Made by a program: the position numbers and the translations under genes
The notes under the pieces: model-generated
Database searches by the model: none
What the model was told of the DNA's origin: nothing
The model's input: the letters and a program-made list of their open reading frames with translations, nothing else
Part shown: positions 1,665 through 12,706 of the stretch, piece by piece
How the letters are laid out: each line of letters begins with the position of its first letter
Position numbering within the stretch: the first letter of the stretch is position 1
NCBI GenBank assembly: GCA_943704425.1
Contig: CALSCP010002154.1
Span: 1-64,000 of the forward strand
Reading direction: 5' to 3'
Length of the DNA stretch: 64,000 nt
Source of the DNA: Ministeria vibrans ATCC 50519
Taxonomy: Eukaryota; Protista; Filasterea

Positions 1665-1894
1665 GATAAATTTTATGCTAAGATTATTTTAAAAGTTAAA
1701 AAAATAAAACCGAACGTCCGAATTCCGATTATCAAAAATTTACCCATTCTCTTCACGACTTTTTGTTTGTATCCCCTGGTCAAAGCTTAAGACCGAGTAG
1801 TATTTCTCTCTGTCTCTTGTTTCTTTCTGGGGGTTTCATCTTTGGCGTCGAAAGTTATTTGGAACTGCAACTTCACTGCAACACTCGCGGCGTC

Positions 1895-4800
1895 ATGACG
1901 AGGGTTCTTGTCGTCCTTGCCGCATTGCTACTCTGTGTGGCTGCCGATCAAGGTACGTATGGTCCTTTAGACGACGTAGAAGCGCAAGTGCGAGACCCCT
2001 AGCGGGAGTGTGGCCGAAAGAAGACCGAAATTCCAGGCGACATTCCGACAGAAATATTATTCATCTCGCCGCGTGCTTCGTTGGCGCGTGCCGTAGTCAT
2101 TGCGTGCTTTTCTACCTCATAAGAACAAGCCCCGCGTCCCACAGAAGCACAATCCTCATCTTTCCGTCGCGTACCAGATCCATTTTATATTATTCTGAGT
2201 TTTGATGTTGATTGCCAGCTCACACTCACGCTCTTCTCTCCTGCCCTCCTTGTCCAGGCGCGTCCCAAACACGACCCTTACCCGCATCCGTCTTTGAGAC
2301 TGCTCGCATTGCACTTCATGAACCGGAAGCGACTCGGAGACGCGATGAGGGAGTCAGCCACCAACTCAGCCTCACTGCTTTTGGAACGTACTAACTAAAA
2401 ACATTATAATAATAATTATGACTGTCGTATTATTATCAATGTTATTTTTATTAATCTTCCGCCTCACGCTCACGCCGTTTATGTGGTGTACATTGATCTT
2501 GCACTTTAGGCAAATAAACGTTGACTTTGTGCCCAACACCGACAGTTGGGAAGGGCAGGTCAAGGTTGCGGTCAGTGGCGGGGTTCCCAAATTTCTCGAT
2601 ATCTCAAGATATTTTAGAGGAACCAATCCAAGTAAAAGATTGTTTTTATATTGGAATTTTTTGATTATTTTTTTTTTCTTTTGCAGACATGCCATCACAT
2701 GGTGTGATTGACCCCGATACGGGAGTATTCGATGGTATCATTCACGACCTCGCTCACAACGAGGCGTACTACGTCGAGCCAATGTCACGCTACCATAACA
2801 TGGGCTCGGCCGTGCCCGCCGAGCACAACACCGTGGTTTTTCGCGCTTCTGACCTCGATCCTATTGACACAGCTCTTGAGTATGGCGCCGCTAACCCCCC
2901 GCAGCTTAATATTCCCACGGTACGGTCGGCGAGTCTGAAGTATGCTTCCTCATTAAATTTGTGTAGGCTGTGCTCACGGCAGCGCTCGAGGGTCAAAGAC
3001 ACCACACGCATACTTCACGCCGTTCATTGTCGCGCTCTCGTCGTGCGTTTCCCACTGACAAGTCGTGTTCTATTCTTCTTGTGGCCGACCACACCTTCAT
3101 TGCCGAGATTGGATCTAACCAGCTCGCCATCGACGAGATGGTCTTCCTTCTCAACGAGGTGGACGGCATCTACCGCACCACCGACTTCAACGGCATCACC
3201 GGAGTAGGCTTTCGACTCGCTGGCACGATTGAGCTCTGGCCCGATTCCAATCATCCTCACTACCCGTGGCCCACACCCGCGCCGGGCACGTCGAATAGCG
3301 TACGGGCTAAGCAAAAAAATAAAATTAATACTATCTTAATTACTGGTCCTCAGGTTCTTGACGAGTTCTCCCGGCACGGCTACGAAGACCGCATCAACGA
3401 CTACGACAATTTTTGCGTTGCCCACGCCTTTGTCCACCGTAATTTGCCTGGGAATACGGTCGGCCTCGCCTGGGTTGGCTCTCCCGCCTTCCTCCTCGGT
3501 GGCATCTGTGCCTTTTCCGTGAATTCCTTTTTTGAACAGAATGTCAACACAGGGTTCAGCGTAAGCCAGCGATGTTATTATAAGAGTATATTCTAAGTAT
3601 TAATCCTTGGGGTGAACCCACACTTATTGTAGAGTATGAACAGCAATGGAAACACCCTTTCACGCGCAAGCCTTACTGGAATTATGGCTCACGAGGTATC
3701 AACAAACGAGCACAAAATAATTAAGAGCAACAAAAATTGATAGAAGATGATTGTGAATGCCTTTTCATTTGTTTCAACAACAAAAACCAACACTAAAATA
3801 TTATGATAATAATAATAATTATTAATAAAAATAATAATAATAATAATTATTATTATTATTATATTTTGTTTATATTAATTTTTCTCTTCTTATTCTTTTT
3901 ATCTATAGATTGGTCACAATTTCGGTGCACAACACGATGAGACCTTTTCGTCCAATTCGACTTGTAACCCGGCTGTAGATGGCACGTTTATCATGGCCAG
4001 TTCGTTGCAGACGGGCAATGCAAACAATGTTCTGTTTTCGCCTTGCTCGCGCACCTCAATGCGTGCCAATCTCGATCATAAGGGCACCAACTTGCCTGCG
4101 TGCTTCACAACGGATCCACTTGCCGACGTGTGCACGTCGAGTCCTTGCAACAACGGCGGCACGTGCACAGCGGGACTTCTGTCCTTCTCGTGCGCCTGTC
4201 TTCCCGGCTTTACCGGTCCCACATGTGATACGGACGAGTGTATGTCGAACCCCTGTCAGAATGGCGGTACCTGCTACGAGGGAACAGCTTCGTACTTTTG
4301 TGGCTGCGCCTCGGGGTTTACTGGCACATCTTGCAGCGAGGTTGATGATTGCGCGTCAAACCCGTGCGCCAATGGCGGAACCTGCAACGACGGTGCGAGT
4401 TCGTACACCTGTACCTGTGCAAGCGGATTTAGCGGCACAAACTGTCTCAGTGCCGACGACGATTGCCTCTCTAACCCGTGTGCCAACGGGGGTACCTGCA
4501 ACGATGGTGCAGGTTTGTACACTTGTACCTGTGCAAGCGGGTTTACCGGCACTGCCTGTGGAGAGGCCAACGAGTGCGCCTCAAGTCCGTGCGTCAACGG
4601 CGGCATTTGTGCAGATGGTTCATCTTCATTCTCCTGTGATTGTACTGGCACTGGATTCAGTGGGACACAGTGTCAAACGGACATCGACGAGTGCGCGTCG
4701 AATCCATGCCAGAACGGTGGTGTGTGTACCAACGGCGCGAACGAGTTCACGTGCAACTGCGCGGNNNNNNNGGATTCAGTGGGACACAGTGTCAAACGGA

Positions 4801-7800
4801 CATCGACGAGTGCGCGTCGAATCCATGCCAGAACGGTGGTGTGTGTACCAACGGCGCGAACGAGTTCACGTGCAACTGCGCGGGCACTGGATTCAGTGGG
4901 ACACAGTGTCAAACGGACATCGACGAGTGTGCGTCGAATCCGTGCCAGAACGGCGGCACGTGTGGTGACGGCGTCAATGGTTACACCTGCACCTGTGCTG
5001 CTGGTTTCTTTGGCGATGAATGCCAGGCTGACGTGAACGAGTGTGCATCGAGCCCATGTGCAAACGGCGGTGTGTGCTCGGATACAGTGGGCGGTTACTC
5101 GTGCAACTGCGCGGGCACTGGATTCAGTGGGACACAGTGTCAAACGGACATCGACGAGTGCGCGTCGAATCCATGCCAGAACGGTGGTGTGTGTACCAAC
5201 GGCGCGAACGAGTTCACGTGCAACTGCGCGGGCACTGGATTCAGTGGGACACAGTGTCAAACGGACATCGACGAGTGCGCGTCGAACCCATGCCAGAACG
5301 GTGGTGCGTGTACCAACGGAGCAAACTTTTATTCGTGCGCCTGCACCGGTACTGGTTTTACCGACGACACCTGTTCCACGAACATTGATGAGTGCGCTTC
5401 TAGCCCGTGTGCTAATGGAGGCACTTGTTTTGATGGCGTTTCGTCATTCTCGTGTGTGTGCCCAGCTGGCCTCCTGGGTGATGCATGTCAGATCAATCCC
5501 GACGACTGTGCCAGCAACCCTTGTCTGAACTTGGCAACGTGCATTGATGGTTTTTCTTCCTACACCTGCATGTGTCCTCTCGGCTTGACCGGCGTCACGT
5601 GTGCTGACGATGTTGTTGAATGTGTGTCAGACCCTTGTACAAATGGCGCCACCTGCAATGAGGGCGTGAACAGTTTTGCATGTTCCTGCGCATCGGGCTT
5701 CACGGGCGTATTCTGCTCTGGAAACATTGACGAATGTGCTTCTTCACCCTGCCGCAATGGCGCCACCTGTATCGATGAAATTGCCAGTGTGACATGCACC
5801 TGCCCACCAGGCTTTGAAGGGGATCTCTGCGAAACCGACATCAACGAGTGTGCCACGATACCCTGCGAGAACGGTGGCACTTGCGATGATGCTGTCAATG
5901 ATTTTTCGTGCACATGCCGCGTTGGATTCAGCGGAAACACATGCGAGAACAACATTGACGAGTGTTCCTCGACGCCGTGTCTCAATGGCGGCACCTGTCA
6001 GGACGGCATAAATTCTTTTTCGTGTCAGTGCTCTCTTGGCTTTTCGGGATCCACATGTGCCACCAACAACGACGAGTGCGAACAGAGTCCTTGCTCGAAT
6101 GGTGCAACGTGTGTTGACGGTGTAAACTCGTTTGTGTGTGACTGCGCTCCAGGATTTATGGGAACGTTGTGCGACCAGGACGTGCTCGAGTGTGCCTCAG
6201 CACCCTGCTCCAATGGCGGCACCTGCACCGAGCAGCTCAACGGATACGCGTGCAACTGTATTATGGGGTTCGCGGGAGCACAGTGTGAAACCAACATTGA
6301 TGATTGCGCTGAAGCGGCCGGCTGTCTCAACGGCGGTACCTGTCTTGACGGCGTCACGTCGTTTGCTTGCGCCTGTGTTCTTGGCTACACCGGTACCACT
6401 TGCGAGGAAGACATCAACGAGTGTGTTTCTGCGCCGTGTGTAAACGGGGGAACATGCACCAATGGCGATGTAGGTTTCTTCAGCTGCGAATGTCCTTCCG
6501 GATTTGAGGGTGTCACCTGCAACCGTGACGTGAGCGAGTGCGACTCCGCTCCATGCCTCAATCAAGGCGTTTGCATCGAGGGAGTCAACTCGTACCTGTG
6601 CACCTGTCAGGCTGGATTTACTGGGGTGGAGTGCGGCGAGAACATTGACGAGTGTGAGCCGATGACGTGCCTCAACGGTGCGACTTGCCACGATGGTGTC
6701 GACAGCGTCTTCTGTGAATGTCCCGCAGGCTTTACTGGCACCACTTGTGGCCAGGACATTGACGAGTGCGCCTCGTCTCCGTGCGAAAACAGTGGCGTGT
6801 GTACAAATATTGTGGGCGCCTTCAACTGTGCGTGCACCGCCATGTTTAGCGGGCCGCAATGCGATGTGGACGTCGACGAGTGTTTGACAGCTCCCTGCGA
6901 AAATGGCGCTACTTGCATCAACTCCTTTGGCGGTTTCTCTTGTGCGTGCGCTCCGGGCTACACAGGAACTTTGTGCTCCCAGGAAATCAACGAGTGTGCC
7001 TCGTCTCCGTGTCAGAACCAAGGCACGTGTATCGACAACGTTGCTTCGTACACGTGTGTGTGCACCAACGACTTTGAAGGCACGCACTGCGAGAGTCTTA
7101 TTATACGCTATTGTGTCTCGTCACCGTGTGCACTTGGCGCCACTTGCAACGAACTCGCCAACGGCTTTTCGTGCACTTGTGCCGCAGGCTTTACCAGTGC
7201 CTTTTGCAACGCGGACATTGACGAGTGCGCAGCATCGACCGTGTGTGCCAACGGCGGCAACTGTAGCAATACTTTTGGTAGCTACTTTTGCCACTGTCCG
7301 GAGGGATTTACGAGCGTCGACTGCAGTGAGAACATCGACGATTGCACTGTGAGAGCCGGCCAGTGTCAAAATGGTGGGACGTGCGTCGACGGAATTGCTT
7401 CCGTTGTGTGTCTGTGCATTTCGGGGTTCACCGGGACCGACTGCCAGCAAGAGATAGATGAGTGTGCCTCTTCACCGTGCGCCAACGGTGGCGTGTGCAC
7501 AGATCGTTTTAATGGGTTCACCTGTGAGTGCACTGCAGGATTCACAGGCGCCACTTGTGTCGGCGATGTGGACGAGTGCGCTTCGACACCCTGCGCCAAT
7601 GGTGGCACTTGCGCCAACCAGCTGAACAGATTTGTCTGCACATGTGCTCCGGGATTCTTTGGACCCCGTTGTCTTGGAAATGTCAACGAATGTGGCTCGT
7701 CTCCGTGCGCCAATGGTGGCACATGTAGCGACGGCGACTTTGTATTTGTGTGCGACTGTGCGCATGGCTACACCGGAGTTCAGTGTGAGATAAACATTGA

Positions 7801-10800
7801 CGAGTGTGCCTCGTCGCCCTGCAGAGATTTTGCGCAATGTATCGATGGCATCAACCGCTTTCTGTGCAACTGTCCAGCCGATCGCACCGGTTTCACCTGC
7901 GACACGGCCTTTCTCGAGATCTCTTTCGAGAACCAGGGTGGCACCGTTGCGATTGGAGACGTATCACTCACCTTTGCACCGGGCAGTCTGCCCGTAGGCA
8001 CCGTGGTGACCGTAACTGTATACATTCAGCTAGTTGTGGCACCCGACGGAGGCACGATTGAAAGCTTGCAATACCTCGTGCAATTCTTGGCAGGTAGTGG
8101 CGTAGGTCGTCGTGACGCGGGATTGCCACTTCCATTCAAGGTACATTATATGCTTCCAGGTGATGCAACGCAATCACGGCTGTATGGCGTCTTTGATATC
8201 GATCTGGGAGTGTGGGTGCCACTTGAAGAGCTTGCTTCGTGCCCTGCCGGCTTCGTGTGTGGTCTCTCGGATCAGCCTTTGGTCGTCCTGGCCGTAATCA
8301 GCTTTGAAGAGTGCCACTCGTCGCCCTGTGCTAACGGCGGTACCTGCACCTCCGCTGGACACGTGTTTACGTGTGCATGTTCGCCTTTGTTTGCAGGCGA
8401 GGTGTGCACTATCGAGCTATCGCCGTGTGCGTCCAATCCATGCGGTCAGGGTTCGGGTGTGGCCGGGTGCCAGAGTTCACCCTCAGGTGACGCATACACA
8501 TGTGTGTGCCACGCTGGCTACACGGGCGCCACTTGCGACCAGTTTTCCGGTGGCTGCGTCAGCTCGCCCTGTCAGCTGGGCGCTGTGTGTCGTCTGATTG
8601 CACCCGATGCCCAAGAGTTTGTGTGCGATTGCCCGCCTGGCGTGACGGGCAGCATGTGTGAGACTGACGTTGACGACTGCTTTGTAAAGCGGTGTCGCAA
8701 CTTTGGCACGTGTGTCGACGAGACGAATGGTTTCCACTGTCTTTGCCTTGAGGGACTCACAGGTGAATTGTGCGACGCGGAGATTGACGAGTGTGCCTCG
8801 TCGCCGTGTCAGCACGGAGGTGTGTGTCACGACGAGTTCCGCGGCTACTCGTGCGATTGCAGCTACACCGGCTACTATGGCGAGCAGTGCGAGCGACTCA
8901 TAGACGAGTGTGCGTCGTACCCGTGCCGCAACGGTGCGAGTTGTATAGACCACGTCACGCATTTTAGCTGCCACTGTGCCGCCGGATTTTACGGCTATCT
9001 GTGCGAGGTGAATAACAACGAGTGTGGCTCATCGCCTTGCCGTAACGGCGCAACGTGCTACGACGATACCAATGGCTTCACGTGTTTCTGTGTGCCGGGC
9101 TTTACAGGCGCCAAGTGCGAAACGGACGTGGACGAGTGCGCTTCGAGCCCGTGTTACAATGAGGGCCAGTGCCACAATGGACACTATCCTAATACATTCG
9201 ACTGTACCTGTCCGTATGGCACTGCAGGCCTGCTGTGCGAGGTGAACTTCAACGATTGCCAGTCATCGCCTTGTCTTCATGGCACGTGTGTCGATGGCAT
9301 TGCGTCGTTTGTGTGCGCGTGTGAGCTAGGGTACGAGGGCCCGTTGTGCGAGGTGAACACCCTCGAGTGCCAGTCAAACCCCTGTGCAAATGATGGCATG
9401 TGCATTGACCTTGTCGCAGACTATGTGTGTTCGTGCGCCGCGGGCTTTACCGGTCGTGTGTGTGACATCGACATTGACGAGTGCTTATCGCATCCGTGCC
9501 ACAATGGCGGCTCGTGCCACGACGGTGTAAATTCGTACGGGTGTGCATGCCTGCCTGGCTTTGAGGGAGCACGCTGTGCGGACAACCGCAACGAGTGCGC
9601 TTCGAACCCCTGTTTGCATGGAGCAACGTGTCGCGACCACGTGAATGGCTATACTTGCTCGTGTGCAACCGGATTTGCGGGCAGTCGCTGTGAGGTGAAC
9701 CGCGACGAGTGTGCATCCAGTCCATGCGCTGGTGACTCGACTTGCGAGGACCGCCTCAACAGCTATGTGTGCCATTGTCCCGTGGGGTTTGCCGGCGCCC
9801 ACTGTCAAGTGGACATTAACGAGTGTGCATCGCGCCCCTGTCTCAACCAAGGTGCTTGTGTTGACGTCCAGGGCGGCTACCATTGTGTGTGTCGACCCGG
9901 CACGACGGGCCGTCAATGCGAAACGCGGCTTAACGAATGCGCCTCGAGTCCGTGCCAGTATGGTGGCGAGTGTTTCGATAGAGCGGACAAGTTTGAGTGT
10001 GTGTGTATGCCTGGCTATACGGGAGAACTCTGCGAGGTGGACGTTGACGAGTGTGCTTCGTCGCCGTGTGCGAATGGCGAGTGTGCCGATCTAGTTGATG
10101 GATTTAGGTGCACGTGCGAGCCGGGGTGGATCGGATCGTTGTGCAGCAGCGAAACGGACAAGTGTGCGTCATCACCGTGTGCTGCAGGGCAAGGCACTTG
10201 TGACAATGTTGCTGGTGGGTTTGTGTGCGTGTGCAATGCGGGCTGGACAGGGGCGCGTTGCGACTACGATGTTGACGAGTGCAAATGGTACCCGTGCCAC
10301 AACGGTGGCACCTGTACCAACTTGGTCAATGACTTCTCGTGTGTTTGCCCGCCCGCGTGGACTGGTAAGACGTGTTCCGACGACGTCGACGAATGTGCGG
10401 GGGCTGCATGCAAGAATGGTGCGACATGTGTTGACCTGGCTGCGTCCTCGGGTGGCGGCTACTTTTGTACGTGTGCGCTGGGATACGCCGGTGGTCTATG
10501 CCAACACAATGTGAACGAATGCGAGTCTAGTCCGTGCGAGCACGGTGTGTGCGTTGACCACACCGGCGGCTACGAATGCGTCTGCGAGGCAGGCTACCTG
10601 GGTGTACGTTGTGAAGTGGAGGCGAACGAGTGCGCCTCTCAGCCGTGTCTGCATGGTGGTGTGTGCATTGATCTCGTGAACAAGTTTGCGTGCAGCTGTG
10701 CCTTTGGCTATGCGGGCTCCGTGTGCGAGACTAATGTGAATGAGTGTTTGTCGTCGCCGTGCGGCGCCCATGGCGACTGCTACGATGGCGTTGGCTCGTT

Positions 10801-12706
10801 TGTCTGTGATTGTGCTGCAGGTTTTACCGGTCGCCAGTGCGACGTGAACGTCGACGAATGCTCATCGCAGCCGTGCATTTATGGCAATTGCCTGGATGGT
10901 GTGAACACATTCACGTGTGCGTGTCAACCGGGATTTACGGGGGTGCTGTGTCATACGGACATTAATGAGTGCGCGGAAGGTTCCTGTGGCGCCAATGCGC
11001 TGTGCATTGACCTGGTCAATGGATTTTTGTGTGCCTGTTACCACGGCTACACGGGCACTTTGTGTCAGTTTGAGGTCGACGAGTGTGCGTCGCAACCGTG
11101 CCAGAATGGCGGTACATGCCGCGATTCCACTGGTGGCTTCACCTGCGACTGTGTCCAGGGTTTTGCAGATCCACATTGCAGTGTGAACATCGACGAGTGT
11201 GTGTCGCATCCGTGCAAACATGGCGGCACTTGCGTGGACCATGTGGATGGATTCACATGTAAATGCACGCCGGGGCACACTGGATCAACGTGTACCGTAG
11301 ACATTGACGAGTGTGCCTCGTCCCCCTGTGCGGGGCACGCCACGTGTGTTAACCTGCTGGGCACGTTTCATTGCATTTGTCCCGCCCACTATTACGGCAC
11401 AACCTGCCATGCGCCTGTTGACTACTGTTCGTCGTTGCCTTGTCACGCGGCGGGCACCGCTGGCTGTGACAGCACCATGGCGGGCTTTGTGTGTCGCTGC
11501 CGTGCAGGCTGGACTGGCACACTGTGTTCTTTGGACATTGACGAGTGTGCGACGACACCGTGCGCACATGGCGGCACGTGTATGAACATGGTTGGAGGAT
11601 TTCTGTGCGGCTGTGTACTTGGCTACGAAGGACCGACGTGTGGCACGAACACGGACGATTGTCTGACGTCGTACTGCAAACATGGCGGCACCTGCGTGGA
11701 TGGTTTCAATGCGTATGCCTGCCTGTGTCCCGCCGATTACACCGGTCCCGACTGCTCGGAGCCTGTTGACTCGTGTGTCTCGGCGCCTTGCGTCTTTGGC
11801 GTGTGTGTGGACGGTGAACATTCGTTTGCGTGTCTTTGTGCGCCCGGTTTTACCGGAACGCTGTGCACCGACGACATCAACGAATGCGCGTCGTACCCGT
11901 GCGAACACGGCGGAGTCTGTGCCAATCTAGTCAATGGGTTTGCGTGCACGTGTGCACCGGGCTTCTCTGGCACTCGATGCGAAGAGAATCTCGACGAGTG
12001 TGCACCGATGCCATGCGACCATGGAGCGACCTGTGTGGACGGCATTGACAGTGTGACGTGCCATTGTGCGACCGGCTATGCGGGTGTGCGCTGCGAACAT
12101 AATGTGAACGAGTGTGCATCGGCACCGTGTGCCTATGGCGCCACGTGTGTCGACGGTGTGTCCTCGTACGTATGCCAGTGCCTCACTGGCTTTACCGGGC
12201 CTCACTGTCATCAACATGTGTACGCGGGTACGCAGACAAACACAGGCCAAGCAAGTGTGGGAGCGTCGTCGGCGCTCATTGCGGGCATTGTTGTCGCCGT
12301 TCTGGTGGTACTTGCCGTAGTGGTCTTGGTGTTTGTCGTACAGCGTAAACATCGACAGCACAAGATCGTGCCGGAGCAGACATTGACGTCGTCGTCGTTT
12401 GCACGAAGTTCCTTCACAAGCGACGCATACGCAAGCGACGTCAACGCAGCGTGGCTCGCCACGGGTGTGTCGCGTGGACTGCGCGAGTCGGACGACTCAG
12501 TTGACTTTACGAGCCAGGAAGACCTGTCGCCCACCTCGTCGGTGTTGGGCCACTGGAGCCGCACGAGTATGGATACCGCAAACAGTGGCGTGGACAGACG
12601 ACGCTCGTCGGCAGCATCGACGCTCTCAGGCGAAGTGCGGCAGGAGGCGAGTCTGCCGGGCGCGGTTGGGGCACGCTGGGAGTATGACGACGAGAGTACT
12701 CTTTGA
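1895..12706 (+). CDS. ADAM10/17-like metalloprotease fused to ~67 EGF repeats, a central ZU5-like domain, a TM helix and a Ser-rich tail (~3,300 aa). About 8 exons; last exon 3909-12706.
   Basis: Signal peptide MTRVLVVLAALLLCVAA. Prodomain GVFDGII..YYVEPMSRY..HNTVVFRASDL. Furin-type RSRR/AF. CSILLVADHTF, GLAWVGSP..GGIC. Zinc motif AHE|IGHNFGAQHD across intron 3696-3908, Met-turn GTFIMAS. Ca-binding EGF repeats DIDECASxPCxNGGxC. TM ALIAGIVVAVLVVLAVVVLVFVV followed by QRKHR. The apparent frameshift coincides with the 7-N gap at 4765-4771. Confidence 0.88.
4640..5320 (+). repeat. Near-identical 117-bp (39-aa) EGF-coding tandem repeat, several copies, with an assembly gap inside
   Basis: The unit ggcactggattcagtgggacacagtgtcaaacggacatcgacgagtgcgcgtcgaatccatgccagaacggtggt... 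recurs at about 4648, 4772, 4883, 5114 and 5231. Confidence 0.9.

Follow-up and report, generated by a model that had tools for sequence, protein, structure and literature searches.

A single gene at positions 1895-12706 (plus strand) of the analysed window, which is the whole 64,000-nucleotide stretch of Ministeria vibrans DNA, very probably encodes, as judged from its sequence, one type I membrane protein (about 3,300 residues) whose M12B metalloprotease is placed directly on at least 67 EGF repeats. In animals, both ADAM10/17 and EGF arrays of the Notch type are hallmarks of signalling between cells. The genome described here carries an ADAM10/17-like catalytic domain that has been freely recombined with EGF arrays of a few to about 70 repeats, beside a separate, EGF-less LNR-TM-ankyrin core. 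It is therefore a concrete and testable case of pre-animal or parallel shuffling of Notch/ADAM modules.

Gene model and continuity of the reading frame

The gene consists of eight exons, and a single frame runs through its seven GT-AG introns. Exon 1 (1895-1952) provides the start codon ATG at 1895 and the signal peptide expected from the initial annotation, with a hydrophobic core of mean Kyte-Doolittle value 3.25. Exons 2-4 (2258-2387, 2510-2631 and 2687-2919) encode the prodomain, exon 5 (2967-3299) the prodomain end, an RSRR site and the first third of the catalytic domain, and exon 6 (3354-3560) the middle part of that domain. The 21 residues of exon 7 (3633-3695) close with A-H-E and thereby supply the first half of the zinc motif. 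Exon 8 (3909-12706) contains the end of the catalytic domain, the EGF arrays, the TM helix and the tail. The phases of all seven introns link these exons into one frame that ends at the stop codon at 12704-12706, and GC content is lower in each of the seven introns than in the exons. Together with the collinear domain matches described below, the GT-AG borders, chained phases and GC contrast uphold the one coherent gene model that had been assembled by hand. Exon 7 is too short to be scored alone and was assigned by its splice signals, its frame and a counterpart of 22 residues in paralogue C386, where a contiguous stretch is alike in length and also ends in AHE.

The C-terminal end of the protease and six EGF repeats share a single open frame within one exon (3909-4763), and the fusion is therefore independent of splicing. 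Both sides of the assembly gap are free of stop codons throughout exon 8 (3909-12703), and chance cannot account for a 2,688-codon open frame. The next gene lies on the opposite strand. A GXYLT-like identity was considered for this neighbour (12.9-15.2 kb, minus strand); Pfam, PDB and a genome-wide search for GT8 all failed to confirm it.

The assembly gap (seven N, 4765-4771) is located inside a recent 117-nt EGF tandem (4647-5326, plus strand), which itself belongs to the first EGF block. Read-derived contigs break at the exact 112-nt repeat, so continuity across the gap is argued instead from its identical flanks and from the unplaced contig C152. The 112 nt upstream of the gap are identical to the 112 nt downstream and stand in the same codon register. 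Contig C152 (336 nt) holds three further in-frame copies of the unit with 97-100% identity, in which all seven of the seven differences are synonymous. The model would be an artefact if the protease exons were part of one gene and the long EGF array of another, or if the join at 4765 were wrong. The position of the gap within near-identical repeats is in favour of such an error, as are the presence of the repeat unit on another contig (C1486, 85-87% identity) and the missing RNA support in two small runs whose RNA status is only guessed. However, the protease end and six EGF repeats stay in a common exon and frame irrespective of the gap, copies of the 112-nt unit with 100% identity are confined to this locus, the C152 copies keep the frame and show only synonymous differences, no stop codon interrupts either side, and the following gene is on the opposite strand. 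An artefact of this kind is thus very unlikely.

An independent DNA run from 2022 showed zero differences over 1800-3773 and 3874-4676. In a metagenome strain, indels were confined to introns, and the exon changes were two synonymous substitutions and one conservative one. None of the sequencing runs found to contain the sequence is recorded as RNA, and the two small runs of guessed RNA status left 1800-4076 uncovered and gave just short cross-matches from paralogous EGF repeats. The lack of contigs over the protease exons in these runs would fit a silent or decaying gene whose expression has been lost. Such a loss seems extremely improbable, however, as the frame of 3,300 codons, the motifs and the splice sites are all intact, the repeat copies differ just synonymously, strain-variant indels occur in introns only, and the runs are small and of guessed RNA status.

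Catalytic domain, prodomain and class assignment

The residues found in the catalytic exons support an intact catalytic site, which appears most similar to that of ADAM10/17. The zinc motif HExxHxxGxxHD is complete, its halves (H-E at 3690-3695 and IGHNFGAQHD at 3909-3938) being joined across intron 7 (3696-3908; 213 nt, GC 0.18), a phase-0 GT-AG intron that splits HE from IGH just as had been proposed. The beginning of exon 8 (3909-4130) comprises IGHNFGAQHD and the Met-turn, completes the catalytic domain and adds an 11-residue linker. The methionine of the predicted Met-turn was found at 3993-3995 and aligns with the Met-turn region of ADAM17. The Pfam profile Reprolysin_5 matched collinearly, with positions 2-59 in exon 5, 83-130 in exon 6 and 149-196 in exon 8; single exons remained below the cut-off, and exon-by-exon scoring summed with in-frame neighbours gave 71.4 bits. 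Reprolysin_2 matched exon 6 (positions 69-111) and the start of exon 8 (positions 133-192). In alignments with solved structures, exon 5 corresponded to residues 7-82 of the ADAM10 chain, exon 6 to ADAM10 residues 94-135 and the start of exon 8 to ADAM17 residues 189-248. Each catalytic exon queried singly had ADAM10 and ADAM17 as its only significant PDB matches, again in collinear order. Among public proteins, those closest to exon 5 were ADAM10 from animals and from a choanoflagellate (40-46% identity). In a tree of exon 5 (104 columns) the gene was placed with paralogues from its own genome (support 88/86), outside the animal ADAM10 clade, a grouping that is weak.

The features that define M12B proteases, namely the zinc motif, the Met-turn and a profile match across the catalytic domain (exon by exon), are all present. 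The ZnMc and Disintegrin domains are the diagnostic pair of an ADAM (PMC2770060). In exon 8 (3909-12703) Pfam detected only EGF-type families and no Disintegrin, LNR, NOD, ankyrin, DSL or MNNL domain, which, for the disintegrin, LNR, ankyrin and DSL domains, agrees with the absences reported in the initial annotation, and no ADAM10 Cys-rich domain was found in the protein. The ADAM10-type Cys-rich/membrane-proximal family PF21299 had no match genome-wide, a weak negative because the control genomes were unmatched too. In the absence of disintegrin, ADAM10 Cys-rich, LNR, DSL and ankyrin domains, the protein is therefore an M12B protease and by definition neither an ADAM nor a Notch.

The previously noted RSRR, a convertase-type site in exon 5 (3033-3044), precedes the predicted mature N-terminus and aligns with that of crystallised ADAM10. 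The nearest paralogues keep the motif RxRR-Ala-Phe/Tyr-Pro, of which RSRR-Ala-Phe-Pro is the version in this gene, and the genome carries two P-domain convertase loci. The prodomain contains no cysteine and is therefore without a cysteine switch. Its supposed likeness to the ADAM10 prodomain was not substantiated: exons 2-4 had no Pfam match, the comparison with ADAM10/17 gave nothing significant, the PDB search returned chance matches only, and the sole match came from the same genome, where exon 4 is 39% identical to paralogue C348.

EGF array, membrane anchor and proposed function

The first EGF block (4131-7900, plus strand) comprises 33 Notch/Delta-type repeats as assembled, the first of which starts 11 residues after the protease, and the second block (8312-12208, plus strand) comprises 34. 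Five repeats precede the gap, one spans it and 27 follow before the 137-residue spacer; with the final 34 this gives 67 as assembled and matches the estimate of about 33 and 34 made by eye. Overlapping contig ends would reduce the count to 66, and C152, if it fills the gap, would raise it to at least 69. The best PDB matches of the repeats are Delta-like 1 and Notch1/2, and Pfam EGF_CA matches 17 stretches of the protein. The description of the repeats as mostly calcium-binding holds in so far as the consensus is present, but the strict N-terminal form (D/N-x-D/N-E/Q before Cys1) occurs in 38 of the 66 complete repeats (about 58%). Among the same 66 repeats, the Asx-hydroxylation consensus is found in 49, the O-glucose sequon in 52 and the O-fucose sequon in 38. 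Genes of the GT90 and O-FucT families were found in the genome.

The two blocks are separated by a non-EGF module of 137 residues (7901-8311, plus strand) that contains an RR dibasic. No relative of it was detected in public proteins, in Pfam (even at E = 10), in its own genome or among PDB sequences (phmmer), and its single-sequence AlphaFold model, with pLDDT about 42, is too poor for structure searching. One weak Atlas feature match of 0.87 gave a ZU5 lead, with no ZU5 in Pfam or PDB phmmer. The module could act as a hinge or a cleavage point. Behind the second block, a single TM helix (12272-12340) is followed by a basic stop-transfer stretch and a Ser/Thr-rich cytoplasmic tail of 121 residues (12341-12706, including the stop codon), so that the anchor and the tail of some 120 residues were annotated correctly. 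The tail ends in -S-T-L, a sequence that resembles class I PDZ ligands and may serve as one.

The sequence itself establishes the gene structure, the intact catalytic motifs, the domain order, the paralogue family and the occurrence of convertase and EGF-glycosyltransferase-type genes, and expression, activation, stalk geometry and substrates of the protein are inferred. We consider it probable, on balance, that the product is a type I membrane glycoprotein in which a convertase-activated protease is displayed on a long EGF rod and acts at a distance. A furin/kexin-type convertase would remove the prodomain and so leave the active protease at the far end of a long rod that is O-glycosylated and stiffened by Ca2+. 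In fibrillin and Notch structures each cbEGF measures about 2.5-3 nm. An extended rod would on this basis, its rigidity being assumed, be on the order of 150-200 nm long. Judged by the physics of cbEGF modules, a protease held far from the membrane is plausible. Cleavage would then take place at a distance or in trans, with prey, the substratum, the matrix or neighbouring cells as targets. Such a molecule would be of unusual design, its protease working far from its own membrane on the tip of a rod of possibly 150-200 nm.

The protein may instead be mainly an adhesion or receptor molecule that works through its EGF repeats, TM helix and PDZ-type tail, the protease being a regulatory, self-processing or shed module; the RR in the middle of the array may then be cleaved to give a two-chain receptor. 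The Notch/Delta/Crumbs-like EGF repeats with glycosylation sequons that tune Notch-ligand binding are consistent with this role, as are the -STL end, the RR site in the orphan module with its weak ZU5 lead, and paralogue C348, which is minus a zinc ligand yet retains its EGF repeats. However, the catalytic residues of this gene are all intact, as are its Met-turn and convertase site, a binding partner would have to be assumed, and ZU5 is unsupported by Pfam, PDB sequences or a usable model. We regard a primarily adhesive or receptor function as rather unlikely, and a distally displayed active protease is the preferred reading.

Origin of the architecture and comparison with known systems

Protists of this kind often show unusual combinations of domains. 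The genome has at least nine M12B loci, four of them with EGF repeats. In paralogues C386 and C348, which are 46-49% identical to the present gene in the catalytic exons, the EGF repeats begin right after the protease, as in this gene, but are few. C348 also has a SPRY domain, and Asn replaces its third zinc-ligand histidine while the EGF repeats are kept, so that not all family members need be enzymes. C1139 resembles the present protein as a giant of about 2,850 residues with an ADAM10-like zinc motif and many EGF repeats (about 27). It differs in keeping a disintegrin domain, which is present in C2586 as well, and carries other inserted modules. The direct protease-to-EGF junction in two paralogues points to lineage-specific domain shuffling, and for an M12B-EGF family with such different EGF numbers the simplest account is lineage-specific shuffling followed by tandem EGF expansion. 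The gene would thus have arisen by domain shuffling within a lineage-specific M12B family, with tandem EGF duplication still under way.

Outside this species, the searches found no relative with the same architecture, which was seen solely in the genome's own small family and had been described as unfamiliar in the initial annotation. The public records searched appear to exclude those of this genome itself, and the lack of a self-match is therefore uninformative about earlier annotation. Exon 5 searched against 1.84 billion representatives gave 43 matches, none with an EGF array. The metagenome loci matched were bacterial M12B genes or protease-disintegrin genes, and the nearest metagenome relative (P0003) runs on into a disintegrin-like CGN motif. 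The exon joining protease and EGF repeats had no usable match in the Atlas. Comparison of one paralogue head with long proteins yielded a single grasshopper ADAM10-like protein, which has no EGF array, and the head of C386 matched only a 97% identical environmental copy. Sequences of the source organism occur in seawater and algae metagenomes.

LNR and ankyrin domains are present together on another gene, on contig C2097, whose single frame of 1,301 residues encodes a signal peptide, three LNR domains, a TM helix and ankyrin repeats and no EGF; DSL matches lie on contigs C2494 and C2427. The Notch modules may thus be partitioned otherwise than in animals, with the EGF array on an ADAM10/17-type protease and the LNR-TM-ankyrin core separate. 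If acting together, they would represent a trans-acting proto-Notch or a snapshot of Notch-forming shuffling, a scenario to which we give little credence. In it, the EGF-bearing protease would supply both a ligand-sensing array and an S2-type cut for the EGF-less C2097 protein. ADAM10/17 carry out the Notch S2 cleavage in animals (PMC2770060), and glycosyltransferase families that modify Notch EGF repeats are present in the genome. However, the basis is domain co-occurrence alone in a genome with many EGF proteins and at least nine M12B genes, and a protease at least 150 nm off its own membrane would be badly sited for a juxtamembrane cis cut. A division of Notch function of this kind is therefore quite improbable. 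The earlier view that enzyme and substrate modules of the Notch pathway are united in this protein was an over-interpretation, as its own M12B-EGF family is better explained by lineage-specific shuffling.

Among known proteins, meprins and tolloids likewise combine a metzincin protease with EGF modules, and meprin is also membrane-anchored, but they are M12A astacins with one or two EGF modules plus MAM, MATH or CUB domains. Notch receptors and DSL ligands share with the present protein the tandem EGF repeats, the O-glucose, O-fucose and cbEGF motifs and the type I membrane topology. Compared with Notch (36 repeats), however, the array is about twice as long, a protease occupies the N-terminus, and LNR, NOD, ankyrin, DSL and MNNL domains are missing. 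Classical ADAMs (order pro-MP-disintegrin-Cys-rich-EGF-TM-tail) are likewise single chains in which an M12B protease occurs together with an EGF-like module, a TM helix and a tail. Their disintegrin and Cys-rich domains are followed by just one EGF-like domain, whereas here about 67 EGF repeats come directly behind the protease. The atypical M12B ADAMs ADAM10 (Kuzbanian) and ADAM17 (TACE) have HExxHxxGxxHD, the Met-turn, the convertase site and type I topology in common with it. It differs from them in a prodomain without detectable similarity, in at least 67 EGF repeats in place of the disintegrin and Cys-rich domains and, if the proposed mechanism is correct, in cutting at a distance or in trans, unlike the juxtamembrane cis shedding performed by ADAM10/17.

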